Assembly: GCA_977030845.1 (NCBI GenBank)
Contig: OZ365115.1
Coordinates: 5,890,001 to 5,954,000 of the forward strand
Direction of reading: 5' to 3'
DNA: 64,000 nt
Source: Fimbriosthenelais zetlandica
Taxonomy: Eukaryota
The position numbers and the translations under genes were made by a program. Below are positions 414 through 38,119 of the stretch, in pieces. The notes under the pieces were generated by a model. The model did not search any database, had not been told where the DNA came from, and saw nothing but the letters and a program-made list of their open reading frames with translations. The first letter of the stretch is position 1; each line of letters starts with the position of its first letter.

Positions 414-1226
414 TTACGTACCCCCACATCTCTCCTGAGATTCCCCAGCAAAAGTGTCAGTAAACATGGTACTTGCACGCAGCTGGGAACGCATTCTATA
501 CCCAAGTCTGACCGGAGTTGTCTGTGGTGAGCGGGGACGAGCGGGAGCAGGTGGGCTGTTCATGGGAACCATCAAACGGGGGCGAATGTTGAGGCGATCG
601 GGCGGGGATGGGACAGCGTGAGACCGGTTAGTGGGAACAAAGAAATCTTCTCGTTCTAAGGTGGGAGAGGATGACATGGACATGTGATGGGGAGGACGTA
701 TGCCTAGGGATGTGTTGGGATGAGTAAGAGAGGGGGGTGTATGAATGACTGGAGGGGAAGGCATGAGAGTGGGAGGTAGCGATAACGGGGTGTTCATGCC
801 ACATCTAACTGAGGCAGACTGGGTATTATTGCCCTGCTGTAATGTTCCACATGGCCGAAGAGTAGAAGGAGGTGGTGGCAGCCTTGAAAGGCCTGCAACT
901 GTCATACCTGGTGCCTTCCATGTTTGTGGCGGCCATACATGCTCTGACATTGGTGTTGGGTTGGAGGAAGGTGCATAGTAGTTGGTAGCGGGCTGGCCGG
1001 GCTGTGAGTAATAGACTATGGGCTGTCTGGGTCCATAGTTAACAGGTGCCGGGACGGTTGTCGGCGCTGCTTGTATTGGCGCTGCTTGTATTGGTGCTCC
1101 TTCATGATAGAATGTAGTTGAACCTGATGGGCCTGAAGGGGCTGGGGGTCCTGACGATGGCATTACAAACTGTGGTGGACCCACCAGTCTGGGCTGGGCC
1201 CAATATCCATAATGTGGAGCAGTCAT
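414..1226 (-). CDS. Proline-rich, low-complexity protein of unknown function (probably one large internal or first coding exon)
   Basis: 270-aa open frame rich in P/S/T/Y/Q, with an internal 15-bp duplication (AAPIQ AAPIQ). It is bounded by an acceptor (ctattttag|, exon starts 1243) and a GTACGT donor (exon ends 422). An upstream exon at ~1670-1778 ends in GTAAG in a compatible phase. No recognisable domain. Confidence 0.5.
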   Translation of the reverse strand: MTAPHYGYWAQPRLVGPPQFVMPSSGPPAPSGPSGSTTFYHEGAPIQAAPIQAAPTTVPAPVNYGPRQPIVYYSQPGQPATNYYAPSSNPTPMSEHVWPPQTWKAPGMTVAGLSRLPPPPSTLRPCGTLQQGNNTQSASVRCGMNTPLSLPPTLMPSPPVIHTPPSLTHPNTSLGIRPPHHMSMSSSPTLEREDFFVPTNRSHAVPSPPDRLNIRPRLMVPMNSPPAPARPRSPQTTPVRLGYRMRSQLRASTMFTDTFAGESQERCGGT

Positions 1227-8400: not shown

Positions 8401-11400
8401 CCTAGGTCATCTCCTGGAAAATTCAGGTAATCGTTTTAAGCTAACATTTTGAATTCTCTCTCAACCATGACTTCCTTGATCAGTAATTTAGGCCAGTTTT
8501 AACAGCTTGAACAAACTTTAAGTATGGATGTTATGTTTTAGTGGAGAGCAGACATCAGTTTACAGAAGCGGGTGGCATGGCTAGCTTAGTTGGTCTACTG
8601 ACCAGAAGTAACGATCCTCAGCTTGTTAACGCTGCCAAGTACGTTCTCCATCACTGTGTTAACGAAGGTCAGTTCTCCACCATTTTTCTACACACAGAAC
8701 CTGCAACTAAGTTAGATTTAATGCAGTTCCTCAGAGAAATCACTCATTAGTTTGTGTTCTTAATATTTGTATAGGAACAAACCAAAACACTGTTAATGTG
8801 GAGAAGGAAGATGCAAGCAAGAATGAAGTACCACCCCTCCATGATACGCAGGTTGCTAATTCAGCTCCTCTAGCCTCAACTTCCAATAGTGAGGCCCAGA
8901 GAGTGTAAGTATTTATTATCAATTTCTCATTATAATCGAGCAATTGTACTGCAATTGCTTCCCTTTTGGAACGGATACTCAAACTGAAGCTTTTACATTC
9001 TTGAAGTTCCCGTCTGATTTTTGTTGATTAAAATGCCTCTTTCTTCTTCCAATATTTAGTTTAAAATTCATTCAAGATAGATCCTTTACTAATTGATAAT
9101 TCAGGGAGAAGATGATTGATGACAAGTTGAAGGCGTTAGAGAGACGACTCTCCAAAGATTACGTGGAATCTGAACTGTCTGTGTCTCGTTTATGTCAGAC
9201 AAAACCCAGCACTGTCACCCTTCACTCCGACCCTCGTTCATTTACCTTGGATGGGAATAACACCATACAATCTATCCAGCAAAACCTACCTGGCTCCTGT
9301 CAACCTCATGGATCTATCCCTTTGCCAATGTCCCACTATCAAGCCCCTTCTCATAATATCAATGCCGTGCAAGCTTCTGGTGATTTTGTGGTCCCAAACC
9401 TCATGTCCACAAGCATCCCTCTTACAAGCCAAACACAGATATTGACAAATATGACTGGGAATGTCTCTCAACCATCTCAAAACCAAGAAAATAAATATAT
9501 TACATACAAGGGAGCGTCCAACCGGGGCATGACCATGCCACTACCAGTTTCAGCAACAGATGAACATCCTGTGCCTAAAGTTTCTGGATATTCAAGGCGG
9601 CAACAGCCAAGAAATGAATTAGAAATTCAGTTGGAAAAGGTAACAATATTTTGCATCATCATTTACTGTACTAATTTCTTTCCTATTTCATTAAACAAAA
9701 TTCAAACTTTTGCTCAAAACCATTATCTAAAATAATATTCATGTGCCTCTAGCTCTCCCTAGTTCTGAACTCTTAGGTTTTTGTCATATTTTGATTATTT
9801 TAGGAAAGAAAATTAAGGAAAAGTATGGAAGCCAAAGCAAGAAATCTCGAGCAAACCTTGAAAGACAAAGAGCGGAAGGAAAATGCGCAAGCTGTAGCAC
9901 TGGAATTGAAAAAGCAAGAAAGAGCAAACCTGAAGGTGAGATATTTGAAGTTTTTATTTCTTTTTTTGTTCCATATTGGTCAAATGTTTAGACAGAATAC
10001 AAGAGCATTCTTATTTATGCTACTCAATACTAATATATCTTTTTTAGCAGAGAACAACCCTTCGAAAGGATTTACGACATGCCCCTGAAAGAAAGACTAG
10101 AAGTGAAATTTTGTCCTTTCTCAGTGAGGAGGATATCAAGTCTCCCCTCATGTCCTCTACTCCGAACACCTCCCCTTCATCCGAGGACACCAATCCCCAA
10201 GATGGAAGACAGGAGAGGAGAGGCAAACTTATCGACAATCCCAGATCTGATAAAGACATTCGGAAAGATGCTAAAATTCCTAAATGTGGCCGAGAGGAAA
10301 AGAGACTGGAAGGGAAAGACAAATCAAAGCAGGCAGGTAAAGCCAGAAAGGAAAGTGTTCAAACACAGAAGAAATCTGCAGAAAATCTGGAAGAGAGTGA
10401 AGAAAGGCTGGAATCCAGTGATTCAGAGAAGTCCCAGAATAAAACAGTTGGACTCCAGACACAGATGTCACCAGTGGTAACAGTAGCAGGACCAGGCCCG
10501 AGTGTCTCTGAAACGCCTAAAAATAGAAGCCAGTCTATTGGAGTACAAACCCCAATCTCCTTCAATGCCCCTCTACTACCACCGCAAACTCAGGAAACAC
10601 GAAAAGAAAATTGCTTCCTAGCTCCCGACTACCATGGATCCCAATCCACACCAACAAAACCAAACCCAACATACACTCAGGTTGAAGTAATCTACTTTCC
10701 AAGCGCATTAGATTCGCCCAATGCCACGCTTATGCCAAGGGTTGTCTCATTGGTTCCCAAGATTTCCTCAAGGCCAGAAACGCCCCAGAAAAATGATTCT
10801 TCAATGATGAATGATTCAATGATAATACGTACACCTAGATGCTCGGTGAAGAAGATAAAGAGCAGACTAGAACCGAAGACCAGGTATTGTTGTACCCCGA
10901 TTAAGAAACCTCGGAGCCTGTGCTCTCCTGCCATACGACAGTCCAGTGGTAAATGTGGAGTTCCAGCAACCCCTGGTAGAGAATTTGACATCCAGTTGCT
11001 TCAAGCTGCTAAGGTTTCAAACAAACAAGTTCCTAATATTCAGAAACAAGTTGCGTCAAGTATTGAAAGTCTTGAAGGAAGATTCCTGAGAACTGAAGGA
11101 AACAGAGGACGGGGTAATGAAGAATTTGAGACTCCCAAGAGCAGCAGGGGAGAGTTTCGACCCCCAAAACTTGTCCACTCTTCGACTTCAAGTCTTCGCA
11201 GGATTGTTCATAAGCATGTTGATCGAAATGAGCAGAATGTACGAGATGATGTAGATGAGCTAGAGATGCAGAACCAGGGAGATCAAATCACTGATACTGG
11301 TAAGTGAATAACGAGTCTAGCTCATTGTTGGATGCTCCTAAATTCCCTGTGCAAATAGATTTTCACTGTCCTCCTCTGCAGATACCTATTTTAAAGAGGC

Positions 11401-14560: not shown

Positions 14561-17500
14561 CTATGGTAGTACATGTACCGGTATGGCATCTTTAGGCATG
14601 TCATACTTGGCTGGAGTTAGACCTCCATATTCCCCATTTTGACTCGAGGAAGAATATATCGGCCTTAACGTGGCATCGTCCACATCATTTTCCCCTCTCT
14701 CCTCTGCCAGGCGTGCCCGACCGAGGATGCGTTCCATCCTCTCTCGTTCTCTCTCTTCTTCGTCTCGTCGAGCCACCAACTTCTTGATGAAGTTGAACAC
14801 CAGTAGATCTATGAGTTCAAACACTGTCAGCACACTGCCCCCTAGTAGCAGACCCATGAATCCTCCAACATCACCTAGTGAGGAAAAAGGCCAAACATTT
14901 CGACATAATACTTTCGCAGCAGTTTGCCAGGGAGATTGAAATTTAGCAACTGACAATCATGAGGAACTGAAAGGAGTTTGCTTGGTATGGCCTACCTAAG
15001 AATTGTGTTAGTTCATATGCACGTATTTGTTTCACTGTTTGGTGCTTCAGTTGAGCAAAGTAGACATCCATGGTTAGGAAATTATCCCTGTATGTGAACA
15101 AAACCAAAATATTTAACACCAAGGCAATTAAGGAAGAGTTTTATCTTGTATTGCTTTGTGACAATCTTACTATGACACTGAACCCCTTCAATGTACTGGC
15201 AGAATTCCAATTCATTACTCTGTGGCAAATATTTGACAATCCATGACAATAATACTCACAGTACAAATCGGTGGGCTATACTCCTCTGCTTGACAAACTC
15301 GAGGTATGCTGTCTGAATATCAGCCATGGAGTCAATAAGCTTCTGTTTGTTGAAAATGAGTTGCTCCTCAAAACTGTCCACTTCCTTCAACAGTTGATCA
15401 CAGAAGAACATCAAGGCATCATGGATGTATCGCTTAGCATGGTCTCTCACAAAGATGCGCATTGTCATATCTCTGTTCCATACCTGACAAAGAAAATACA
15501 ATGCTATAATTAAACAAGATACTGTGTCTTTGGAAGCCATGAATTTTTCTCTGGTTATTTCTCACATGCTGCGTTCTGGGGTGATTACATTACCTTCCAG
15601 TGTTCTCGGCCTTTATCATTGACTCTCTCTGGACTGTCCAGGTTGGGTATTGGTTCTCGCCAGATCTTCATCTTGCTTGATTTTTCATAGAATATGAAGT
15701 CATCTAGGTACTTCTCCAGGTGGTTTGCGTCACGAAGAGCTTCCATATAATACTTCAGTAAGCTGTCTCGAATTGACTGAAATAACATGAATGGCATATT
15801 GATAGTGTCAAGCCACTAAATGAATCTGCATGTTATTTTATTGGCTTATCCATTGAGGGACTCCTGAACAAAATATGATGTTGGCTGTTACCTCAACAAA
15901 GACATTGAGTAGCCTCTATCTAATAATTTATCCATACTTATGTTAAACATTGATATGTAACAACTTTGTTTGCAATATTACCTGTATGCTTGAGCGAAGA
16001 GGAGTTGTAAGTCGATTCTCAATCCGTTCCACAAAAGTGTTGATATTGGAAAGATCAGTTGAGCTCTGGTCATCTGGCTTGAACTGTTCTAAATAATCCA
16101 GTTTACTCACTTTGTTATAGATGTATTTCTGGTACAGGCTATTTACATTTTCTTCATCCTGTTCAAGAATATGTGATTCAGACGTAAGGTTATAGTTATT
16201 ACCAAGCAAGACATTTTGCTGTTTAAAGACACTTAGTTCTTTGGTCATTGATGCCATACGTTGTCTGGTCTTCTCTAGAACCATGTCATACTCCCCTAAA
16301 CACTCCTTCAGGGTGTTGAAATAGGTCATGTAGGTAAAAATCCCTTCCCTCATTTCGTTGACCCGCTCTTTATCAAAAGGACCTAGTGTCTCTCCATCTG
16401 TCTGATCCTCAAAGCCCTCCAACAGTAAGGCAGCTCTCTTTAATGTTGCTGACACTTTGCTCAGTGAGTTATGGCACAATTCCTCATCAGCAAATAGAGT
16501 TTTGGGGAGTTTCCTCGTTTGTCTGTTGATCTGCATGGCAGGAGAGCCCTGTCCATTCTCCTCAAGGTCCGCGATGAGACCCTGCAGGGTCTCGTGCATC
16601 ATTTCAGACTGAGTGATGCATCGACGGGAGACCTCGGTGAAGAATCGGTGCGTGGCGTTTTGTCTAATTGAGAGAGTCAGAAGCTGATCTACTTCCTTCA
16701 AACACACCTGAAAGCAGAGTTTGATGAAGTCTCGGTTAGTTTGAAAAACAAAAAGTGATCTAATACTTAGATAAGAGCAGCTGGTCTTGCATATTGGATG
16801 TACCTGTCAAAACCTATTCGATATTCTTCACCACCTATTCGATAGTATCCCACTCTATATACCATTGTGTTGTGTCAAACAATGCCAGAAATGAGCTTAG
16901 AGTTGTCTTTCTTAGCAATTTCAGGCACAATTTAATGGTTATTCTATCCAATTATACTTGACAAAAGGAGGAAAATATTTAGTTTTAATTCTCAGCCTTG
17001 GTGATTTGACTTGTTTTAAATGTTGCACTTTAACCGTGATGAGACTTACCTTGGTATCACCGAGGTAGATGTGTAGGAGATCTATAGTATCAGAGTATGA
17101 ACTGTTATAGGCGCTGGAGTAACTCTCTACGTCCTCCAGTAGGTTCTTTATGTCGGCTATAGCCAGGTCTACCAGCGTCTGTGAAGCTGTGTCCATCTTA
17201 GCAAACTTAGAGGATTTCATATCTCCCAGGTTGGAGCGAGCATAACCTATCAGTTCCTGATACTTCTGTAATACATCTGTTGGAGAAAAAATTGAAATCC
17301 CAATCATGTTTAGGCAGGATGACATTAGTAAATTGATGTGAGAACTATGCTACATTTGCATTTGGAGTATATAATTGATTGTGGCTTACTTTTCAGAAGT
17401 TTGAGATCGTCTTTGAATCTTTTCTCACTGACCCGTTGTTTGGCATCCAAAGCTTGGTGGTAGCGGGCACGAAGGTTCTCAACATTATTACCCCGCAGTA

Positions 17501-20500
17501 TATAACCCACACTCAAGTAGGACAGACTGGCAGAGGAGAGCGATGGTTCAAACACTGTCTGATAACATGGTTTTGGACATTTACACTGTTTATGACCTAA
17601 ACTTGGTTTATCTGGAAAATGGAAGATATTTATAAGAAAAAAACATGCACAAACAGGCAATTCCATACGATTATAGTAAATTGCCTGTTGAGGGATTTAA
17701 CCCTCGTACAGGTAAAATAGATTACAAATCTCTGGACTTACTGATTGCAGGCAATGCGCAGTCGAAGTATGTTGTCAAGTTACAGATTGGTGGGTAATCT
17801 GAAAGTTGAGTATACAGTACATTAAACGTACTTTTTATACCTCCTAATTCTGTGGTTAAATCTATATCAAAATGATTTAATATTACTTCGGGCAAATATC
17901 TGCTGACATATCTCAATATTGATTACATACCTCCTAAGACAGGCATGTATGCGTCACGACATCCACATTGCTTGATGACATCAAATGTCTCGCATTCCCT
18001 CACACATGCTGAATGGATGTACTTGTCATAGAAGTAGAGATCTTTGACGGCACAGTCTCCCCAAGGTGCTTCCAGATTCTCAGCCTGGAAATTATAATTT
18101 CAAAATTCCAACTGGTGCATTTTGCCAGAGAAATAAGGAAGACCAATTGAAGGCAGTGAACTTAAGAACTTGACTATTGCTTAGTGCAGTAACACACACC
18201 AACTGGCTGGCCTGGTTTAAGAAATGAAATTTAAGCAATTGAAAGCGTTATTTTTGGACTTTTTAGCACTTACCTCGTTTAATCTGATGCCTACCAGTGT
18301 GTGAGTGCCTGGAGGAATAGCAAAGCCCAGGTCCCGTACCTGCGGTAGCTCTTCTTTGGTGTGAAGAAACACCTGGAATGTTTAAATCATTTTATACGCA
18401 AAGAACAATAAGAAACTCATTGCCCTGTGGACAATTGTGATTGTAAAGGTTCATTTGTGACCGACGAGCCTAAATATTTCAATTGATAAATACCTTGATG
18501 CCAGCATCACTCTGTGGTCCATTCATATAGTCGTACTGCTCTATGTTCAATGTGAGACTTAGACCAAATCGTGAACCTGTGGAATGGCGAATCACAGAGA
18601 TAATACACTTATATCTCTTATAACATATAATTCATAAATCAAGACTATCGTGTATGTTGGAAGCTAAATATCAAGAGATACTCGACCTGTTTTAGCTGTT
18701 TTCACTATATGTTTCCTGTTGTTAAACGTGTAGCAGACGCCATAATCTGTCACCTGCTTAGTCAGGTTCACATACGAACATGGATGGCCTTCCCATTTAC
18801 AACTGAAAAGAAGTTGATACGAGTAGTTTGATTTCATTGAGTCCTCATTGGACATGCTATCTGAATGAACCATAGGGAATGAAATGAACATTTACCTGTA
18901 TATGAAATCCTGCCCTTGGTGGGCGGTCCTCATGTAGATCTCTGTCAGATTCATTGCTACACCTATTGGTCGATTTGTTGTTGGAGGCTTGTTGATGGAA
19001 TGTGCCACATTATCGCTAACTTCATCTACAGCTGGCTTGATTTCTTCAGTCGTATTCCCCATAACTGCAGATATATCAGTGAATACATAAGTGAAACTAT
19101 TTACCCAAAATACTGCGAGTGAAAAGACACCAAATGAAATGTTTAGGCATACTTACTGTTACAGGAAATTTCGTCTTCTGCTTCATGACAGTTGGGCACC
19201 CCATCACATGCCAACCCGTGTGGTATACATGTGAACTTAGCTGTACAGGTGGCCTCTTCCTGAGAACATGCTGGCAAAACACAAAAGTACTCCTTGCTCG
19301 GATAAAAGTGTCAAAATGCAGGCAGCAAACGGTTTTGCTGGCTCACATTGTTCTTTTGGCACTACTGCAGAACTATAAGAAAGTCTGTGAAAGTGAACGG
19401 GAGAACTCTGTTCTTTAGCCCCGGCAATGAGAATGATTTCATGATAGTGGTTATAACAGAACTTACTGATGTTTGGACATATTCCTTCTGTAATGATGAC
19501 ATCATCGAGTCCACCTCTCATCTGCTCACCACTCATCACAAAACGTAACCGGTAATAGCCCTCAGGTACCTCAATCTGAAACAGTGAGAGTTTTACTGGC
19601 TTTTTATCAAATCACCTTAATTGAGGGATACATGCAGACAAGGCTAGAGATATTCAGCTTGAGCCAGCTTTGAAATTTTCATCCCATTCAGAATTTCAAT
19701 TCAACTTTTTGTCATTCAATACATTGGACTCTGTATGATGTCCTTGCATGACAAAATCTCATCACAGAAATCTGAGAAACTGTCGCACAAACTGTTATAC
19801 TACTGTAGAATAACTTACCTGCGCTGTGTGCCATGAGTTGTCAGTAATGGCACGCACACTCCACACTGTCTCCGGGGCATCCCGCCAGTGGTCCAGGCTT
19901 AGAGATAAGGTATTCACTAATGCCCCCTGGTGGCCAGTGCCCTGGAGGAAATAATAGAAGTGTAGGCAGGAGGTGTTGGTTACCAGTTGGTAGGGCGATA
20001 ACAGCATATTGGATGATTTGTGCTCCAAATGGTCACTCGTCCTCAGATAGTAAGATCCTGAAATCAAATAGTTGATATTTGTATCTTACTGCCTCCTAGG
20101 TTGATTCTGGTGAGATTATGTAATTCTCTGAATACAAGAAATTATAGATATGTTCAGATGGAAGTGGTATTCTATGAATGAAGCCTTACCAGGCGAGGCA
20201 TCACTATATTCCTTGCTTCTGATCCATTTGACGGGCCCTGATGAGGCATCCTGATACCCACAGTAATCCTCATCCACAAACGTGCAATTAAAACTGCCAT
20301 ACACTTCTACAAGACACCAAATCAAAGTACTTATTAAGGCATTTTGCCATTTAAACTGCACTTTGCATGATATCAGTGCTTGAAATAGAACAAGATATTG
20401 CTTATTGCCCTGAACTTCTAATTTTAAAATCTCAGTCTGTACTTCTCTCACCTTCGTCATAACATTTTCCGGATTTCATGTTGATGTCCCTGATGCCCGC

Positions 20501-23500
20501 ATGTTCTGGTGCCTGCTCGGCATAGCGGAATTCAAATATGAGACCATATTCATCCGGTGACAAGTCTAGGCTCACCTTATGCCAGGCCTGTTAGTAACAA
20601 ACAATAGTGCGTGACAAAGTAGTACAAACTGACTGAAGCCATTTTTTCCCTTGAAATCAGCTTAAGTAACAGAAACATATGGAACAACTATTTATATTAG
20701 AAAATGTCAAAAGTCAAAAGTCAATTGAAACACTTACTTTCACCTGACCATCATGGAGTATGTCCACCAACATCCTTTCTTCAGTTTGATTGTAACTATG
20801 GACAGTAAACCAGTTATGAGACTTTGTCAGAGAGAACAATATTATATAGGATTATTTCCTCAAAAAATAACATGTTCAATGATAAGAAATATCACAGCAG
20901 TCCTTACCTGTAGACTTTGATGTCCACGTATCTGGTGAAGAAGTAGAAAGTGAGACAACTCTCATTGACGACTTTCTCTATCGGTGAGACTAATCTGCTC
21001 CAGTCTTGTTCTCTTGGCCGTAACTTGAGGGTGTTCTTGACAGTCATGTAGAAACCTGAAAAGATATGAATGATTTGTGAAAGAGGACATACAAGTAGTC
21101 AATCTTTTTACAGATTGTCTGGTTGCAAGATTATTCATTTTGAATACAATTTTATGCTCAGGGATTGAGTCTGAATCCTAAGAGTACTTACTGACTTCCT
21201 TGTCATCTTCGTCTTCCCACTCCTCTGTCCCTGTTCCATTGCCTTTACTCAGTGTGTTGTTGAAAGATTTCATTTCTTTCTTTTCCTGCTCCTCATCTTC
21301 ATCTTCCTTGTCATCAGGGGTGACTTTTTTCCGCACCCAGATCTGATGGAGGTTGGATGACATGTATTTATATCCACATGCACATCTATCGAGGAAGGAA
21401 CAGCTGATACCAAACTTCTCATGTGATTCTGAAAGTGGATTGAAGATTGTCAAAATACTGTGCCAATTACTCGACCTCCCTTTTCCAAAATCCTGGATCG
21501 GCCCCTATTATCCTCAAGGAAACCAGAATTTCATTCTAATCAATATGCCCCATAATTCAGTGTCAAAATTAAGTGGGAAACGTCCAAATAAAATGGGGAA
21601 ATGTCAAAATTAAGTAGGGAAATGTCAAAATTAACTTGCCCTGATGTTTGCAAAAGTGAATAGTGTCATGATTGTGCTGAATGACAGAGCAAAAGTTATC
21701 AAAGTTCGTGCTACGACCAAAAGTCATGCCAAAGTTATAGAATCTGGAAAAGGGATCAGATTGTCAAAGCAAAAGTTGTGACTGTCTAGATGTTCTCTAA
21801 AAGATTGGAATATTGCGGCTTTCTATATTCTATTGCAAAATTGCCAAATCTCGAGATGAAAAAATCCAAACTGTTTCCCCGAGGCCCATTACAAATTAAA
21901 GACTCGGCTAGTTACCATAGAGCTTATATATGTTGAATCCACCATAGTTCTGTGAGAGTTCCAGGTCCCAATTTTCACAATATTTGATGTAGCAACGTCG
22001 TTTTTTGAAGTTGAAAGCATTAGCACCGTAGGTACGGGTGATATGCATACAGCCACGCACACTTACACGCCGAGTAGTGTTGACATGAAGACACCTACTG
22101 GCCAGGCCCCGAACCTCATCATAGACCAGCCGAAACTGATAACCACAGTCTGAACACAGAAGAAAACTTAGCAAAAGCATTCACAACTACAGAGATGACA
22201 TTCAATTAGAAGCAAAGAAAATGTGTGGACATAACTAGTGGTTTTATCCAAGCCATTGAATTTGTCAATACCTGAGACCATTTCCAGGAAATCATCAATC
22301 CATCCATAAGCAATGTTTTTTGTAATCAACCATCCAGACAAATTATAAAAGGGAGCTATACTAAGCCCTATATCGAACCCACAATAGCTTTTCAAAGCCC
22401 AATTCTGAAAGAATTTAGACTAAGTTTGGCAGACCTAAGTTGTTAAAGACCCATGGGGTGCCTAAAGAGGTGCATGGTGATGGAGAGGGAGTTGGAAAGG
22501 AAGGAGGTGAAGTGATTTTAACATATTCAAAAACTTACCATTTCCATCACTAAACTCTTTGTAGCATGAGCGGCAGGGGACTGTCGATGCACACATTTGT
22601 ATAGGGTCAGGTGGCACTTCTGGTTCCTCTGTTGCATTTGGCATCATTGTTGTCATAGCCATCGTAGTGAATTGCTCAGTGGTTACAGCATCAGTCATGT
22701 TATCTGTGGAATTGTCGGTAGTGACATAGTCCAAGGTAGTTAGCGTCTCCATAGTGGTTGCTGCAAAGATGGGATGATTAGATACAAGAAAAGATAATAT
22801 TTTCTGAAGATACATCATGATCTCAAATATCACCATTATCCTATTGCTGCAATCGATATGGGATATTCTACATTAGAGACACTACAAGAAAGCACCAACC
22901 TTCTATTTCTCTGATGATTTCTGTACAGTTTTCCGTCAGCAGGGTGATATTATCCACCAGTATTTGAGTCAAAGAAGGGTCTCCAAGAATGGCACTGAAC
23001 ACCAGGTTATAGGTACCGTTAGGCAGCATGATGTGTGTATAGTTCCACAGTCCACCACTGGTGTCGGCACCTAGAGTGCAAATCAGCTCCCTACCCTAGA
23101 ATATGGATATGACAAACAGGTGTTATAGGGATATGGACTTACTTCTGTATATTCCTGCCTGGAAAAATATTCTTCTATACCGGAAACGAAATTGAACATC
23201 ACTTGTCCTGCACCCAAGCTTTGTTTCAGTGCAGTAGTAGAATTTAGTATACGGTAATTAAGGTAACAGTACCTGGTAGGCTATGTGAGTCGTCTGTAGG
23301 AATATATCAATGGAGGAGCCTTCAGTGAGCAAGTAATCTATTCGTATACAAGTCTCTGATGTCATATTCAGTGATGGTGACATTAGAACACTGACGTCAC
23401 CTTGACGTGCATCACTGACCAACACTCCATACACCCCGTCAGTACCATCTGTGGTCATCAATTTAGAAAGTCAGCAACGATAAATTATACAGAAATTACT

Positions 23501-26500
23501 CCCCAGCAGAAAGATAAGAAACATTTTAGTTGAATGGTTTGGAATGAGATTTGAAGGGTACCAACCAATCAACTGGGGGACCCAATGAGGGCCAGATACA
23601 GTTCTGTAGCCACACGCTTTGTCATGAGAGAAAGTACATCCCAAGCTTTTGGTAAAATCTGAAAATAAGACAAGATGGCTGATAAAAGTACATTTATACA
23701 TCAATACTAATAACATTAAGATGCGTGAAGTATAGAGTAGTCACTTACTACAGACGGCAAACTCATCACTGAGGTCTCCACAGTCATCTTCACCATCACA
23801 TATCAGGTCACTTGACACACACCGACCATTATCACAGGCGAACTCCACTTCACGACAGGCTGAACGGTGGGAAAGGAGGACAATAGTTAGTCACCAATAT
23901 CTATTGCAATATGCCATATGTTGGTAAATGAAGCAAAAACCGGATCAGATTTTTTTTATAATCTTAAAGTTGATGGTAGTTGTCAGGGCTATGTTAACAT
24001 TGGTTTGATAAGCAGAGATATTTTATTGCACCCGTCCCATGATAATCTTTGTGGATTGTTACCTCAATTGAGCCCATGCATGTATGAATTGCTTGTACAA
24101 GGCAAGGGATGAGGACATTGGATCAAGTGAGAGTAAGAAAGGTACCCTGCCATATAAACCTACCACAGAGTGGAATATCGCAGTACTCCATCTCTCCCGT
24201 ACTCAGGTCTGTTATACACCAGGGACTGCTCGGATCATCATCCGGGTTACGACAGTAGTTCTCCAGCTCACTGATCGTCTTGTCCACTAACTGGGCGTCC
24301 TGAGACCGCCAGATCATGGGGCGCAGAAACGGTGGCACCAGCTCCCACCTAAAACATGAAATAACTCATTTCACAATAAGGTCCTGTGAGGTCAAACAAA
24401 TTGAAATGATATATCTAGGAGGTTGGGATATAGCTGCAGGCATACCTTTTGCAGGTGGTGTTTGAGGCAGTGGTGGAGAGGTACCCTGCATAGCCTTTAC
24501 CAGATACTGATTCTTTGCAGGTATGCTCTAAAATGTAGAATATCATATATCAGACAGTATTTTGGATATGTGATTAATTCCGATGTACATATGGCACTGG
24601 AATATAATCATACTCCTTCTTACATGGATTCCTTTTTATCTTACCGGTTGGGCAAAGCCCAATTGTGACATCATCAACAGCCACATTTAGGAGCTCGTTG
24701 CTTTGGCTCGTAGCAGCCTCCAGTATAATTCTATAGTAACCAGTAGGCAGACGCTGGATGCCACGTTCCCATAATTGAACAGATCTGTTAGAGAGCGAAG
24801 AATGAAAGAGATAGTCAAGGACATGAACATCCAGATCGATGGCCAATGTGGAACTGTATATCAAGTTGACCTTTAACTCGCCTATACTGCAAACCCAGCA
24901 GGCACAAGACGTCTTCACAACGTCTTTAGACGTTGTGAGGACGTTGTATCTTACTGATGTCAGGAACAAGGGCTCAACAACTTTCGTACAATATTCTTGC
25001 CCATTATGTGTACCTCAAGTGACTTAATTAAATGTGCCCGTGTCCCGCAATTGTTTGAGCAACAGTTTATAAGATTTGGTTGTTGCCTTGGCCAGGCCCT
25101 TCAATCTCGACCTCACCTGCTATTGGGACGATACTGATGCGACCATATTGTAGTGATCTCACTATGGTGAGACTTGGTCTTCACGTTCAAGGCGCCCCCT
25201 CTCAGCTGATAGTAGAACTGCACACAGGTGGCGCCATAAGAGCTGATGTAAGGGGAGACGAGGTGAGCGAAGCTACCAGGCTGGTTAAACTTGGTGGCTG
25301 CTAGCAAGTAACTTCCAATACCTGTTAAAACCAGTCATCAAATGTGCTTAAACATTGCAGCAAGCGTCTTCTCCATAATTATTGTTCAACGCATTAAACT
25401 TAATGATTCATACTTACTCGACATGAATGTATGGTCATATTGTGGAAATTTAACATCAGCCCGCGTGTCTTTATTGACAGGCTTCCAGGATAAAGACTGA
25501 GTATCCTCTTTTACAAAAGCACACAGACCATCCTCAAAACTACAACTGGCAGAACTTTGTACTGTAAAGGAGATCAAATCATAGTTAAACCATGTAACTC
25601 CAATGATGATTCTTCAATTGAAAATTTGGATGAATTGGAAAGGATGGCACACCAACCTTGGCATTTCTTTCGATGGAAATGATCTACATACATTTCCTTC
25701 ACAAAACCTTTGTCTGATGACGTCATATCAGCAGGAGTGACGTAACATGTGGCTGAGCGTCTGTCGTACACAACTGAGCAACATGAGTCGCCATGACGTG
25801 TGAGACAGAGATGACGACATACCTTGGCTGACACATCCACATACGTGGCTAATGTATCTGGCACATCCACCAGTCGTTGGTTGGCAAAACGCTCAAAGCC
25901 AGTTTGCCATGATTCTGCAAGATCATGGAAGATTGTACCAGTTCAATTGCAGCATTTTACTTTTATTTATTAGTGTATTTTATTCATATGGTAACCGAAA
26001 TCACAAATTGATAATCTTTGAGATGAGTTATTACCTTTACCGTCAGTTTCATTTTTCTTGACACCTCCACTCTGTATTTTTACAAAACTCTCTTCAACTA
26101 TGTCCAGCAGCCCGAGTCTGTGTGTTGCCGACATTCTAAATGCACAGAAAAGACAAATTTTATATCATTGGGCATACAAATATCATTGGACATTTGACCT
26201 GGAAATTAATAAGAAGCAATGATCGTAATGTGATCGTAATAGAGCAGTTACCTGAAGACATTTTGGTTACAGATGGTAACTGCTGGGAAGCGGACATCAT
26301 CGGTGTATATCACCTCTACATCCACAGCTTTAGGATGACTGTAGAGATACGTCAGGCGATCTGACATGAACCAGAAGAAGAAACTGGTTGCTAACAGCAC
26401 CACTGTAGTCCATAAAACCCTGGTAAACAGAAATCATCGGTACATAACCCAGCATAAACCATGTACACATTCTGACAATGCGTTCCACTGCCATACAGCC

Positions 26501-28641
26501 CTGGTTTTTGCAGTGACGTTAAACTCCAATGAAACAACAAGCCTTGGACATACTGATTGCATATATAGACTGATGAGCACCTATATTATTAGCTCAATGC
26601 CAGATTCTGTGCCCTCCGGGACGACCCCTATAACCAGTAAATGGTTGATTGTGTCATATTGCTTGCAATTAAGCCTAGCAAGAAACTAGCTGCACTGGCA
26701 CCATTGTTACAAAATACCATATTGAATGCATTTTCAAATCAGGAGGGATCTTTTTATAAAACATCCCATTAAATAAGATACGTGTATTCAGTGAATTAAC
26801 TGACGAACAGGAATCGTAATAGAGCGAGTAGATGAACTAATATGCAGATATGTAGAGCGAGCAGATGATCAGCTCAAACTTATCAACCAAACCCAAGCCG
26901 CAGTTGATAGATATGTCATGCCCTCATTCCTCTGGTCACCCATTGAATTATTGCTGACATACATAATAATATCATATCAGTCAGGCGCGAAAATCCCCAA
27001 TTCCCTCCAGTCCTCATCCATATGCGAATGTGGAAACAATGGTGTAGATGAATTAGGTCTGCGCATATAGTGCACACACTACCCGATACATGGTTAGTAT
27101 GATGTGGTGTGTATACCCCAAATACCAGTTACCTGGGTAAAGATATGTGTAAAAGCAAAATGGGAATCGATTGTCACACCAGTATAGTTCACAGCCTGGT
27201 AAAAATAATTTACCAAACTTTTTGCATTCGATTGCCTTGACTTCACCCGATTTATATGCATGACAAAATTCCCCACAATACTTTCACTTGCTAATGTGAA
27301 TAGTTCTGAGTTTTGAAATTCCTGTTTAACTAATGATTTATGGGGAATCGTATGCATAATTTTAAACCGGACACTGCTACCACAAACGGATGAACAAGGT
27401 AAAAAGGCCATTCATCATGATAACTGTCAACAATGGCTGATAACAAACAAGGTTTGTTGTTCCTTGGTGATTAATTTCTCTGTTGATGAGGTGAATTCGT
27501 TGTTATATTCTCACCAGGGAATAATGACACATTGTCATAATCACCTAGCCCATGTATTGCTTTTACATCCTCTTTTGTGTTTAATTATGCCAGTTTTGGT
27601 TTCAATTAATTTGGTGTTGCACTCCATGCACTTGATTTTCATCAGTAGGCTACAGAAAATGAGAAGACGTAAGAGAATCAAGGAGAAAATTGACGGATGT
27701 ATGTGACGCCTACAGTTTCTCTATTGAAAGCAGTCAGTACCGAAATATTTTCCTATTATATACATACTGCCAGTATAGAAAAATATTCTAGGTAGGCCTG
27801 CTGCAGGCTTGATTTCTAAAGATCTGCAAATCTGAGACATTGGAAGTAGGCTACATGTTCTAGAAAGAGCAAGACATCTTGCACACTGGAATAGGAAGCG
27901 TTGAATGTCGGCTATACCTTGGAGAGTTCACATGGTGCATTCTGATCATTGTACCCCTGAATGAGCGGGTGTTTTAGTTATCTTCACAGAACTTCACTCA
28001 GTATGAAAGTTGATCAGAATTTCACTGGACTTTTGGCCACCTGTATCTTGGGGAAGTATCATACGAAATACCTGGGGATGAACCGAAGATGAAAAAAACA
28101 GAATAGAATATCTGAGAAATTGAATGTTATAAAGTTTACCTTCGTGATATGTAGGGTGTGTCGGCTGTGATGTATCTTACACCGTGGAATGTTGTGTCCT
28201 GGGTGAACTGAAATATCAGTGCTGCCCACGATTTCTTGTTGCCGTTTCCATTTCCTAGAACGAAAATGAAAGCTTCGATAAAGATATGCTGCCTGCACAT
28301 GAACGTGTTACTTTGTGACAGAAAAAGTTGACCTTAATTCGTATTAGAAGTTTTCAAATTCAATGAAGGAAGATTGATCACAGAATGTGTTTGATGTAAA
28401 ACTTACCACTTGAACCATTGGGACCACCCATTCTTTCTTTTAAGAAGGACGCAAACACAGAAAGTTTGGATTTCGGAGCCTGAAAATGAGCAAAAGTTGA
28501 AAAATAAGTCCATTCTGCGATATAAAAACACAATAATCCATTGTGAATCTGATAATTGGTATCCAGCCCATAATCAGATTATGCAGGTATAATTTGTTGG
28601 GCGATACTTGCCTCAGCTCCGTACGTATTTCCTCCTGCCAT
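14561..28641 (-). CDS. Giant DEG/ENaC (ASIC-like) amiloride-sensitive channel subunit, ~2165 aa, 40 coding exons
   Basis: Exons (high-low): 28641-28612 (GC donor), 28479-28407, 28254-28140, 26419-26252, 26135-26041, 25914-25657, 25561-25418, 25321-25117, 24784-24645, 24527-24446, 24348-24164, 23859-23749, 23658-23566, 23448-23273, 23095-22900, 22760-22539, 22461-22435, 22355-22236, 22149-21916, 21428-21192, 21055-20908, 20795-20738, 20587-20452, 20306-20190, 20057-19819, 19575-19467, 19270-19157, 19064-18896, 18802-18687, 18576-18494, 18372-18274, 18084-17931, 17798-17742, 17611-17390, 17276-17050, 16707-15982, 15776-15594, 15483-15260, 15087-14996, 14874-14561; total 6498 nt, open throughout. 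Hallmarks: [13 protein letters not shown] (HG motif), TM1 [48 protein letters not shown], Cys-rich thumb, [10 protein letters not shown] and TM2 [24 protein letters not shown]. Confidence 0.9.
19157..19270 (-). other. LDL-receptor class A repeat 2
   Basis: [36 protein letters not shown]; this frame is not in the ORF track. Confidence 0.85.
19467..20306 (-). other. MAM domain 4 (3 exons)
   Basis: [28 protein letters not shown]...W...[18 protein letters not shown]...[13 protein letters not shown]. Confidence 0.88.
20452..21428 (-). other. MAM domain 3 with an acidic internal loop (4 exons)
   Basis: [12 protein letters not shown]..[acidic insert]..FYM..RLVSP..SCLTFYF...AWHKVSLDL...LIFE...[13 protein letters not shown]. 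Confidence 0.82.
21561..21635. repeat. Short intronic tandem repeat (~20-21 bp, ~3.6 copies)
   Basis: tgtcaaaattaagt(g/a)ggaaa repeated, with one divergent copy. Confidence 0.7.
21916..22149 (-). other. Second, divergent PAN/apple-like module
   Basis: [45 protein letters not shown]; the cysteine and aromatic spacing resembles PAN, but the assignment is tentative. Confidence 0.5.
22900..23658 (-). other. MAM domain 2 (3 exons)
   Basis: [12 protein letters not shown]...SVLMSP..TCIRIDY...W...[12 protein letters not shown]...[13 protein letters not shown]. Confidence 0.82.
23749..23859 (-). other. LDL-receptor class A repeat 1
   Basis: [36 protein letters not shown], with a complete DxSDE calcium motif. 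Confidence 0.93.
24164..24527 (-). other. Kringle domain (2 exons)
   Basis: C..GKGYAG..STT.S..TCKRW...[17 protein letters not shown]...EYCDIPLC, six cysteines. Confidence 0.93.
24645..25561 (-). other. MAM domain 1 (3 exons)
   Basis: CSFEDGLC..W...DHT...GSYL...AHLVSP....CVQFYY...W...[12 protein letters not shown]...[11 protein letters not shown]. Confidence 0.88.
25657..25914 (-). other. PAN/apple domain exon within the channel finger insertion
   Basis: FERFANQRL...[23 protein letters not shown] (C-x3-C...C-x-S-x2-Y...C pattern). Confidence 0.8.
26252..28254 (-). other. DEG/ENaC HG-motif exon and TM1/beta1-beta2 exon
   Basis: 28254-28140 encodes [38 protein letters not shown]; 26419-26252 encodes RVLWTTVV...[14 protein letters not shown]. 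Neither appears in the supplied ORF track. Confidence 0.9.
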
Positions 28642-35524: not shown

Positions 35525-38119
35525 CTAGGTGGGTGGCACCATGTGGAGGAAGAGGGCAGTCTGGACACAGAAGGCCAGCACAAAAAACAACCAGAAAAAG
35601 ATGCGGTCGCACAATTTACTTATTAGCTTCCATTCAATCTCCACTCTGTCAAGGTCAAGTTCACGTGATCCATAGCCGCGATGGTCAGAGCGATGGTCGC
35701 GAGTCTTGCAGTGGCAGCAGCAGCCGCACGTGAGGGAATCCAGTTCGCCGTCCGTGATTGACATCACGTCCACCTGCCGTCCATTGCAATCCTGCTTCCG
35801 GTCGCGGGAATTGCGGGAGCGTGGGGGCTCTGGAGGAAGCACACTTCCATTGGCATACATGCGCACTGCGATGATTGAAAGCCATCTGGGCGGGCGCGAG
35901 CCCGAATCCTTCTTTCCGTAGACATTAGTGGTAATAACCGCCATGACGAGTGCTATAGTCACCATCACCATGGTCGACCCGAAGAACATACCTGAAATAA
36001 GCAGGTATGGTATATGTCATTTCCCTTTCCTTCCCTTCCAGTATACAGATAATTCATTAGTCTGAAGTTATTCTATTCAACAACATTGTGTTGTCTATGT
36101 ACAAGTTACATTACTTATAAAAATCTATACAATCTCGACCTGTACTGGAAGATTTAAAATTGCCTGAAATGGTAAATTTTATGAAGTTTTCCTGATTTTC
36201 CTGCCACCTACCTAGTACAGGGATAGCGTCCGGTGTAGGAGGCATGGTCTCTCCTACCATCAAAAGGAAGACCACCAGGGCCAGCAAGATCGTCGTCTCT
36301 AGGTTTACTTTCTCTCCGGATTCAACCGGGAGGAAGAAACCTAAAAACGAGATAAGAAATATCAGGAAACAGGGGGCGATCAGGTTCACGATGTAAAAAA
36401 GACTGCCTCTGCGCATGTGGATCGTGAACGTTACATCTGGGTAGGGCTCCTTGCAGCAAGCATAATACTTCTCGTTGCGCTGAGCGCTTATTCCATCTAC
36501 CGCCCATTCCTGGTTCTCTGGCCTGTAATAGACGCTGTTCTTAAAACTCGTGTTGTAGAGTACATCCAACTGGTCGCCGCTAAAGGTCCACGATATAAAA
36601 ACGATCTCGCAGTTCTGCGAATCAAAAGGGAAGTACTTGACATTGAGGGTACAGTAGGTTTTGATGAGCGCTGGATAGAGCCAAAGAACATCTCCACTTG
36701 CTGACACAATCGTATTGGTGACCATAAAATCGTTAAACTTGTCACCAGCACTGCAAAAGAGAAGAGAAAATGATTTAAAATTAACTTATATGACCAAGCA
36801 TATACTACATGGACAGCTTATGATATATAGTTTGTCTTCCAATGCCGTCATACTTCGGTAAATCTTTCTTTTGATATGATAATGGTATGTACAAAAAAGG
36901 CTAGCAAATAGCTATAGGCGACATACTGGCATATGTTTCTAGGCCAGCCTATTTGAAAAAGTCCATGTGCATGTATCCATGTGCTGATTTGAATGCTGCA
37001 TCAGACACACTTGTCCATGTAACGCCGTTCATTTAGAAATGAAAAAACACAAATACAAATATTGATTATTCTAATCTCCAGCTGAGAATGCCTTTACTGC
37101 TGCCACATGCACAGTAACCAGACGCTCCTAAGTGTCTATGTCTCATCTGTCCCCTTACTACAATCATGCAGGCCCCAGATATCAGGGGAATTGGGAGGAA
37201 ATTGCTTCATTTTCAACCCTTAAGCCCTCTCAAGTGTTTTTTGCGCTTTTTTTGTCAACCAAGCCAACATAAATCAAGAATTGACAAATGCAGTGGGTGG
37301 AAAGTAATTTTAAATGGTACACTAAGTTAGTGCCAAGCGACAAACCGTTCTTGGGACAAAAATTGATTGCCAGTCTCCCCTTATTTCAGTCACGTCTGTC
37401 ACATATTAGTATAAAGTTGGAAAACTCGAGGGAATCAAGGAAACTGAAAGCAAATGAACAAGTTGTCTTTGTCTGGCAACGCCAGCGGGGAGAAGGACAG
37501 ACGGAAAGACAGAAATTGGTGGACGTACAAATTGGAAATGACTAGATCTGGAGTCCATATTTGGTTGGCTGGAATTCTGATCGTGCTCACTCCCCCATAT
37601 TCGGTTGCGTTCCACACTAAGTACTCGTCTACCCATCGCTGAAAGAAAAAGTCACTGTCAGCTTCCAAAGAAAATGCTCCAATCTCAATAGTAAATTCAT
37701 ACTATAAATTGGTCAACTGTAGGCCTACTCAAGTTATGACTGTAATTTAATATCAGATCTCTAATGAATCAAATGATTTGGATATAAAACGCTGACTTAC
37801 CTGACGGATAGCGAGTAAACTAGTGAACGTCTGTTCTTTTTCGTTCTGCAAGTGGAAAAATATGAAATAAGACGACACATTTTTGTGGATCAATAAGAGT
37901 TGTATCTCAATATAATTTAGTTTTCATAATAATTATTGTGAATGCCCACCGTATCCAGGATGTGGTAGAGTGATATGGCCACGTTGACGTTGACAGGGGT
38001 GGAGTCATTACGTACGGGACGTGTAGTTTTGTCATAGTGACGTAATATGAGACGCTTGATCTTGTATTCGTTGGATCGCACCACTCGTGACTTCCGCCGA
38101 GCATTTTTCACTCCACTCA
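35525..38119 (-). CDS. Nicotinic acetylcholine receptor alpha-type subunit (divergent, alpha9/10-like), 5'-partial
   Basis: Exons 38119-37950, 37845-37801, 37638-37529, 36750-36212, 35991-35525. Motifs: RPVRNDS, WTPD, Cys-loop CTLNVKYFPFDSQNC, loop B WTF, loop C YYACCKEPY (vicinal cysteines = alpha type), M1 YIVNLIAPC, SGEKV-M2, M3 and M4 (DRIFFWLF). The phase-1 acceptor at 38119 implies an upstream signal-peptide exon that I could not identify. Confidence 0.93.

Follow-up and report, generated by a model that had tools for sequence, protein, structure and literature searches.

A predicted annelid DEG/ENaC channel subunit carrying an array of PAN, MAM, kringle and LDLa modules within its finger domain

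A gene on the minus strand of the 64,000-nucleotide stretch of DNA analysed here (the window), from the annelid Fimbriosthenelais zetlandica, quite likely encodes, as a single unit, an intact subunit of a DEG/ENaC channel, about 2,085 amino acids long, whose finger carries a cassette of extracellular modules and whose knuckle carries a second insertion. Subunits of this superfamily usually comprise some 500-800 amino acids, and the predicted protein is roughly four times the usual size. The predicted gene runs from position 28431 to position 14561, and its 37 exons are joined by GT-AG introns into one open reading frame of 2,085 codons whose sole stop is terminal. This chain of exons is a hand-curated model built from the genomic sequence, the less certain points of which are a weak donor at 23566, an acidic stretch within the exon at 21428-21192, and the start exon.

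All of the DEG/ENaC hallmarks that were tested are present, namely two transmembrane segments (TMs), an HG motif, an FPAVTxCN motif, matches to the Pfam ASC profile in the correct order, and a GGS selectivity filter. The putative first coding exon (28407-28431) opens with an ATG in good context and contributes eight codons before a phase-1 donor that is in frame with the next exon; it is the least certain exon of the model. The cytoplasmic N-terminus continues on the exon at 28254-28140, where the HG motif (TTFHGVRY) precedes TM1. The following exon (26419-26252) encodes TM1 and the beta1-beta2 segment, with FPAVTxCN lying after TM1. In Pfam scans run on stop-free pieces of the minus strand, this exon matched positions 21-79 of the ASC profile (26251-26433, E 2.4e-13), and its matches in the PDB were ASIC5, FaNaC1 and ASIC1/2. 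The hydrophobic peaks at amino acids 48-66 (TM1) and about 1990-2008 (TM2) are the only transmembrane segments of the predicted protein, leaving a large extracellular loop between them. The curated model places a first finger helix, resembling alpha1, at 26035-26135, on an exon that ends in phase 1.

The remainder of the channel lies downstream of the cassette, beginning with a Pro/Thr-rich linker and an alpha3-like finger helix at 18896-19064 in the curated model. Six exons (17742-18802) then encode the beta-ball, palm and thumb, with matches to ASC positions 136-188 (at 18667-18891), 197-233 and 273-321; these and a further match to positions 351-387 fall on successive exons in profile order. 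The predicted channel core has 13 cysteines, and ASIC5, the annelid FaNaC1 and ASIC1/2 are the best solved relatives of its pieces in the PDB. A beta12 exon is modelled at 15087-14996, and the final exon (14874-14561) encodes TM2 with the GGS filter (of the G/S-x-S type), the C-terminus and the stop codon; it matches ASC positions 431-454, and the profile match continues to TM2 over 14564-14956.

Between the thumb and beta12 lies the second insertion, of about 510 amino acids, helical and situated at the knuckle, which follows the end of the thumb (CxCPKPC) on five exons at 15260-17611. Open frames homologous to this region are found in many other assemblies, in several cases within a single exon. 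Apart from one spurious bacterial repeat protein, a protein search with the knuckle exon alone returned open frames of exon size, and no full-length annotated family member. A search with the PAN piece of the cassette, confined by its length filter to targets shorter than full-length proteins, gave no match. Six further related loci (L001, L003, L007, L010, L013 and L014) have long introns or lie on short contigs, and do not extend into the cassette region.

The finger cassette comprises 20 exons from 25914 to 19157, which together encode 3,183 nt, or amino acids 138-1198 (1,061 residues), between the alpha1-like and alpha3-like helices. Its modules are arranged in the order PAN, MAM, kringle, LDLa, MAM, a Thr-rich linker, a Cys-rich PAN-like piece, MAM, MAM and LDLa, with 50 cysteines and 18 N-glycosylation sequons in all. 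In PDB alignments the insertion point corresponds to ASIC1 residues from about 100 to 170, that is, to the finger, and the ASIC alignment of the beta-ball, palm and thumb piece begins at about residue 170. Because one frame runs through all 37 exons, because the introns that border the cassette are only 120 nt (finger helix to PAN) and 92 nt (second LDLa to the next channel exon) long, because no additional transmembrane segment is found, and because a second species shows the same collinear order and intron phases, assignment of the modules to the finger of the channel ectodomain rather than to a neighbouring gene is well supported by the gene structure. Every module border is in phase 1, and phase 1-1 exons shuffled into a phase-1 intron could thus have given rise to the array.

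The original prediction had described a channel with a PAN-MAM-kringle-LDLa cassette in its finger, and had placed these modules within the ectodomain of the channel and not in an adjacent gene. Both statements agree with what was found here, the former through the Pfam matches and the single 37-exon frame, the latter through that frame, the short border introns and the layout of the second species. The exon ends predicted at 26419-26252, 25914, 19157 and 14874 recur in the curated model. The cassette is in frame, as had been proposed, but the accompanying counts of 22 exons, 3,351 nt, ~1,117 cassette residues and ~2,165 residues overall are here revised to 20, 3,183, 1,061 and 2,085. Much of the difference may be explained by a shorter third exon of the first MAM domain (24784-24645), which is backed by a contiguous frame in the second species.

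Most of the individual modules can be recognized by profile. The PAN (apple) exon at 25657-25914, phase 1-1 and 120 nt downstream of the finger-helix exon, matches PAN_1 (PF00024) with an E-value of 1.5e-7 over 25577-25942. The kringle (PF00051), with its six cysteines, occupies two exons (24527-24446 and 24348-24164), the second of which alone matches the profile at E 7.9e-12 (24126-24365). The first LDLa module (PF00057; 23749-23859, six cysteines, E 2.3e-11, profile match 23744-23890) possesses a complete acidic calcium cage, DDCGDLSDE, whereas that of the second (19157-19270, phase 1-1, E 3.9e-7, profile match 19146-19310), which lies 92 nt upstream of the next channel exon, is less canonical (NCHEAEDE).

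The four MAM copies are mutually related (pairwise z of 2.7-17) and conform to PF00629, with four cysteines each, the profile support for MAM2 and MAM3 being weak when each is taken alone. MAM1 consists of exons 25561-25418, 25300-25117 and 24784-24645, with profile matches at 25389-25613 and 25116-25334, and MAM4 of exons 20306-20190, 20057-19819 and 19575-19467, with a match at 19798-20085 (E 1.9e-9). MAM2 (23658-23566, 23448-23273 and 23095-22900), the first exon of which ends in the weak donor, matches the end of the profile at 22871-23095 and is related to MAM1 with a z of 7.9 and to MAM4 with a z of 16.9. MAM3, which includes the acidic low-complexity stretch, spans four exons (21428-21192, 21055-20908, 20795-20738 and 20587-20452), pieces of which match the profile weakly at 20907-21098 and 20435-20590. 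Between MAM2 and MAM3 the curated model has a Thr-rich linker followed by a small C-x5-C-x2-C motif (22539-22760), and then the Cys-rich module at 21916-22149. The latter is called PAN-like from its cysteine spacing and from an unreliable alignment in which only three cysteine columns are shared; its similarity to the first PAN module is not significant (z 1.2), no Pfam match was found in either species even at an E-value of 10, and an AF2 model with a pLDDT of 45 was unusable.

The predicted finger array is conserved across two species. Matches by tblastn to contig ctg144453l of ENA assembly ERZ25070786 keep the order of the gene from TM1 through TM2, all of them on one strand and within about 15 kb, and the intron phases are equal at both cassette borders, the finger-helix exon and the second LDLa exon having the same phases as in F. 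zetlandica. Identity is highest in the channel itself, at 72-73% for the TM1 exon, 73% for the alpha3-like helix, 70% for the beta-ball, palm and thumb (with all 13 cysteines kept), and 83-88% for the beta12 and TM2 exons. In the cassette, identity is about 30-60% and nearly all of the cysteines are kept, including those of PAN (6/6), MAM1 (4/4), the kringle (6/6), LDLa1 (6/6), the PAN-like piece (5/5) and MAM4 (4/4); LDLa1 is 62% and MAM4 50% identical to its counterpart. The second-species kringle is a single exon, 51% identical, with PDB matches to the kringles of plasminogen and HGF at about 1e-10 per domain. A Thr-rich stretch with a similar Cys motif is also present, precomputed MAM matches exist for two open reading frames corresponding to the MAM2 and MAM3 regions, and another has a weak precomputed PAN_1 match. 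Single open frames in the second species bridge joins of the curated model in the kringle, in the last three exons of MAM3 and in the beta-ball exons, and the junction of the last two MAM1 exons likewise agrees with a contiguous frame.

Each module, like the channel exon on either side of the cassette, is bounded by phase-1 introns, with equal phases in the second species, such that any skip would stay in frame. The cassette could consequently be an alternatively spliced option, the main product being a channel of about 1,020 amino acids and the giant form a minor or tissue-specific isoform of possibly variable module content. This arrangement is rather unlikely, as the modules have all strongly conserved their order, their cysteines and their open frame, which shows that they are translated, and the border introns of 92-120 nt resemble ordinary constitutive introns; in any event it is compatible with a giant channel gene and no replacement for it. 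A truncated product is far less probable. Retention of the intron after 19157 would reach a stop within five codons of reading through the donor, and would yield a type-II membrane protein of N-terminus, TM1 and cassette, an adhesion protein or receptor on a channel anchor without a pore. The downstream channel exons are, however, intact, 70-88% identical between species and with 13 of 13 cysteines kept, which argues that the full product is under selection.

Genome-predicted multidomain architectures are often artefacts, and MAM-LDLa proteins may be common among invertebrates, considerations that would favour two genes misread as one, a MAM/LDLa/kringle protein, secreted or membrane-bound, then being encoded within an intron of an ordinary channel gene. 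Yet the cassette has neither a start codon with signal peptide nor a stop codon of its own, lies 120 and 92 nt from channel exons whose strand and frame it shares, and retains identical arrangement and phases in the second species at about 30-60% cassette identity; a nested gene is thus highly improbable and was rejected. The reading of the gene as a duplicate that is decaying or non-functional, within an expanded family, was also rejected as scarcely credible, given 6,258 nt of coding sequence with no internal stop, 36 of 36 introns canonical, and pore and gating motifs intact.

The annelid subunit thus shares with the ASICs, BASIC/ASIC5, FaNaC, ENaC and degenerins two TMs, the HG and FPAVTxCN motifs, a Cys-rich beta-ball, palm and thumb, and G-x-S in TM2, and differs from them in its length, its ten finger modules and its helical knuckle residues. 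In the alpha and gamma subunits of ENaC, extra sequence (GRIP) in the variable alpha1-alpha3 region of the finger contains an inhibitory tract that is released by proteases. The site of insertion is the same in the annelid gene, but the GRIP domain is small, rich in beta structure and furnished with furin sites, whereas the annelid insert is an array of independent modules of adhesion or ligand-binding types. Addition of extracellular modules to a DEG/ENaC protein has a parallel in the EGAS proteins of Caenorhabditis elegans, which carry EGF modules, are of unknown function and gave no currents in oocytes (PMC10424705). The EGAS proteins come from a nematode and are far smaller, and the parallel does not imply that the added parts are homologous. 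The peptide pocket of annelid FaNaC1 is made up of finger helices alpha1-alpha3, the beta6-beta7 loop and a segment of knuckle helix alpha6, and alpha6 of the adjacent subunit adjoins the finger (PMC11026163). The two elements of the ligand pocket in annelid and mollusc FaNaCs (Malacoceros FaNaC1, PDB 8on7), finger and knuckle, are those enlarged here, although the ligand of FaNaC is a tetrapeptide that fits a small pocket, and in the present gene some 1,060 residues of modules replace the finger loop, perhaps together with the alpha2 helix.

The modules themselves have other relatives. The cassette shares its module types and its phase-1 module exons with the MAM-LDLa ectodomains of ALK/LTK, MALRD1 and enteropeptidase and with the PAN-kringle proteins plasminogen and HGF. 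All of these are receptors, proteases or secreted factors, in which the modules do not lie in the loop of an ion channel. In the MEC-4/MEC-10 touch channel, coupling is thought to involve the matrix proteins MEC-1, MEC-5 and MEC-9, which have EGF and Kunitz or collagen modules; there the matrix-binding modules are on separate proteins, whereas the annelid channel would have comparable modules in its own polypeptide. In the literature searched, no description of a DEG/ENaC channel combined with MAM, kringle or LDLa modules was found, in keeping with the original prediction, which knew of no characterised channel of this architecture. Of the modes of gating that it had offered, by a protein ligand, a protease or a matrix tether, the protease version finds no support, because a furin-type R-X-K/R-R motif is absent from the whole predicted protein, in which RKK, KKRR and RKK are the only basic runs.

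The chain leaves the channel at the finger and also returns to it there, so that the array is probably a long loop or hairpin, glycosylated and placed at the outer upper corner of every subunit, with three such arms in a trimer. Its most likely role would be to bind a protein, glycan or matrix partner, with binding or a mechanical pull passed to the gate, as suggested by peptide-gated relatives, whose pore opens when finger helices alpha1-alpha3 move relative to the neighbouring knuckle helix. Alternatively, the arm may merely anchor or localise the channel. A tentative model is that the giant annelid subunits are self-contained receptor-channels, in which the finger arms and possibly a helical mast of three knuckle insertions bind a matrix or cell-surface partner, and binding or mechanical pull directly opens the pore. 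If so, tether and channel would be one polypeptide, a design not known to have been described for any ion channel family.

How stimuli are coupled to DEG/ENaC channels is debated, in particular the need for an extracellular tether in mechanical gating, and the candidates known for this role are proteins distinct from the channel. The annelid channel is predicted to have module types of the protein- and matrix-binding kind built into the finger, movement of which opens the pore in structures of a related annelid peptide-gated channel. The gene would provide a clear case of exons shuffled into the interior of an ion-channel domain, and its conserved design may serve as a natural test of whether the pore can be gated by force or binding at the finger alone.

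The minus-strand DEG/ENaC channel gene of Fimbriosthenelais zetlandica, whose exons run from 28431 to 14561, carries a long array of adhesion-type modules within its own coding sequence. In Pfam scans of stop-free pieces of the minus strand, positions 21-79 of the ASC (channel) profile match at 26251-26433, and are followed from high to low coordinates, all on the same strand, by PAN_1 (25577-25942), a MAM in two pieces (25389-25613 and 25116-25334), Kringle (24126-24365), LDLa (23744-23890), the end part of a MAM (22871-23095), further MAM pieces (20907-21098, 20435-20590 and 19798-20085) and a second LDLa (19146-19310). The ASC profile resumes at positions 136-188 (18667-18891) and continues downstream through 197-233, 273-321 and 351-387 to 431-454, the last in the TM2 exon (14874-14561). 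Because the ASC matches break at 79 and resume at 136, the modules, here called the cassette, sit between those positions of the channel profile. All DEG/ENaC hallmarks tested were found in the translated gene: the HG motif, TM1 followed by a ten-residue motif and an alpha1-like helix at the N-terminal end; an alpha3-like helix that precedes C-x6-C, the Cys-rich beta-ball, palm, thumb and CxCPKPC after the cassette; and the beta12 strand and a TM2 with a GGS filter at the C-terminal end. Among solved structures, the core pieces come closest to ASIC5, annelid FaNaC1 and ASIC1/2. Numbered as in ASIC1, the exon upstream of the cassette ends at ~100 and the one downstream begins at ~170; this interval, where the cassette is inserted, is the finger. 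Since a hydrophobicity scan reveals TM1 and TM2 only, the entire cassette, with its 50 cysteines and 18 N-glycosylation sequons, is extracellular.

Several features of gene structure bear on whether the modules and the channel belong to one gene or two. Only 120 nt separate the finger-helix exon from the first cassette exon, and 92 nt the last cassette exon from the next channel exon; with cassette and flanking channel exons sharing strand and frame, no space is left for a promoter, signal-peptide exon or terminator. Phase-1 introns bound every module at both ends, as well as the flanking channel exons, and with every border in phase 1, modules could be skipped in frame. Judged from sequence, such uniform borders are the signature of exon shuffling, in which 1-1 modules enter a phase-1 intron. 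Translation continued past the final LDLa exon (donor at 19157) reaches a stop after five codons (19146-19157, minus strand), so that a retained intron would yield a hypothetical product consisting of a TM1-anchored cassette without a pore.

The gene model, derived by a dynamic programme combining splice sites and codons over two rounds and then curated by hand against the reading frames, consists of 37 exons with GT-AG introns throughout, totalling 6,258 nt and 2,085 aa, with a single, terminal stop. The cassette occupies 20 of these exons (25914-19157; 3,183 nt, aa 138-1198). The exon ends of the original prediction are reproduced by this model. The totals of that prediction, 22 cassette exons with 3,351 nt and a protein of ~2,165 aa, are slightly larger, and much of the difference may come from a longer form of the third exon of MAM1. 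The short version of that exon (24784-24645) was used; it possesses a strong polypyrimidine acceptor and, when joined to the preceding exon, gives a near-gapless alignment with a contiguous frame of a second species. The model is uncertain at the start exon (28431-28407), at the donor at 23566, which is weak, and at a low-complexity, acidic, D/E/K-rich stretch of ~40 aa (21192-21330, minus strand) within the first MAM3 exon (21428-21192). Nothing in the second species aligns with this stretch, which is either a loop specific to the lineage or an error in the exon model.

That second species is represented by contig ctg144453l of ENA ERZ25070786, which was rebuilt from loci L006 and L012 and is among the relatives recovered with the knuckle exon (below). 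The contig possesses the whole design on one strand, from TM1 exon to TM2 exon, in ~15 kb. The order is TM1 exon (73% identical), finger helix, PAN, MAM, kringle, LDLa and MAM, then a Thr-rich stretch with a small Cys motif, a PAN-like piece, MAM, MAM and LDLa, followed by linker, alpha3, beta-ball, palm, thumb, knuckle insert, beta12 and TM2. Its finger-helix exon ends in phase 1, with an intron of ~97 nt before the PAN exon, and its last LDLa exon is phase 1-1. Each of three regions that are spliced in the window (the kringle, the final three MAM3 exons and the two beta-ball exons) is an unsplit open frame in the second species, confirming the corresponding splice joins. Identity between the two species is 28-62% in the cassette modules and ~42% in the knuckle insert, as compared to 70-88% in the channel core. 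Nearly all aligned cysteines are retained, in MAM1 (4/4), the kringle (6/6), LDLa1 (6/6), the PAN-like module (5/5), MAM4 (4/4) and the channel core (13/13), with MAM3 retaining only 3/5. Near-complete cysteine retention in open frames argues that the modules are probably translated and folded in both lineages.

The identity of individual modules is clear to differing degrees. The four MAMs are mutually related (pairwise z 2.7-17), the second-species kringle matches plasminogen and HGF kringles, and the first LDLa carries a complete acidic calcium cage. For the module labelled PAN-like, Pfam gives no match in either species, the similarity to PAN1 does not reach significance, and modelling with AF2 gave a pLDDT of 45. 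The first PAN domain closes with R-K-K-C-Q (25657-25680, minus strand; R-R-K-K-C-Q at ~915-938 of the second-species contig), a motif that does not fit the furin consensus.

A complete cassette was observed in one species besides F. zetlandica. The knuckle insert, a helical insertion of ~510 aa in the same channel (15260-17611), was pursued by searching 1.84 billion representatives with its large exon; at least 24 relatives were recovered, all exon-sized open frames on unannotated animal contigs. A single exon of ~1.5 kb encodes the entire insert (CxCPKPC to ...H-x-FVL) in several species; in the window and some relatives it is divided among about five. The assembly ENA ERZ25767047 (loci L001, L010 and L011) contains at least two distinct knuckle-insert genes, with introns of several kb, far longer than in the window; one lies on two contigs encoding identical protein, which are probably haplotigs. 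The protein entry NPA72570.1 (P0009), which bears the title "MAG: hypothetical protein, Gammaproteobacteria bacterium", is an animal DEG/ENaC knuckle exon, and a near-identical contig of the same 90% cluster (JGI 3300005095, L005) has beta12 and TM2 exons downstream; the bacterial entry probably derives from the annelid host, its DNA having been binned with the genome of a symbiont. Elsewhere in the window, two large exons (35525-36725, minus strand) encode a nicotinic acetylcholine receptor alpha-type subunit with a Cys-loop and vicinal YxCC. They share 97-98% identity with ORFs on ENA contigs; the best named matches of exon 36111-36725 are Capitella, Paralvinella and Helobdella at 79-82%, versus 46-47% for molluscs, which marks the source of the DNA as an annelid. 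The window also holds a long ORF rich in proline and long ORFs rich in Ser/Pro/Lys, at 414-1226 (minus strand) and 9112-11307 (plus strand).

No characterised channel of this architecture was known to the original prediction, and full-text literature searches found no paper in which a degenerin/ENaC is joined to MAM, kringle or LDLa. What comes closest is the EGAS group of Caenorhabditis elegans ('EGF plus ASC'), an uncharacterised set of channels that gave no currents in oocytes (PMC10424705).

The two insertions fall at alpha1-alpha3 of the finger, for the module array, and at the knuckle, for the helical insert. The peptide-binding pocket of annelid FaNaC1 is built from three elements, namely the dynamic helices alpha1-alpha3, the beta6-beta7 loop and the alpha6 segment of the knuckle, and the finger is adjoined by alpha6 of the neighbouring subunit. 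Closure of the outer finger initiates the rotation by which the pore opens, and ENaC has its sites for protease and ion binding at the same finger/knuckle corner (PMC11026163). Gating by protease, as suggested in the original prediction, is unsupported, since a search of the protein for a furin-type site found none. Each subunit would bear, in the form of the cassette, a long glycosylated arm that exits and re-enters at the gating corner, and that may fold as a hairpin of two five-module halves with the Thr-rich linker between them. Such an arm might instead anchor or localise the channel, but in the favoured reading it would transmit to the gate a mechanical pull or its engagement with a partner, be it protein, glycan or matrix.
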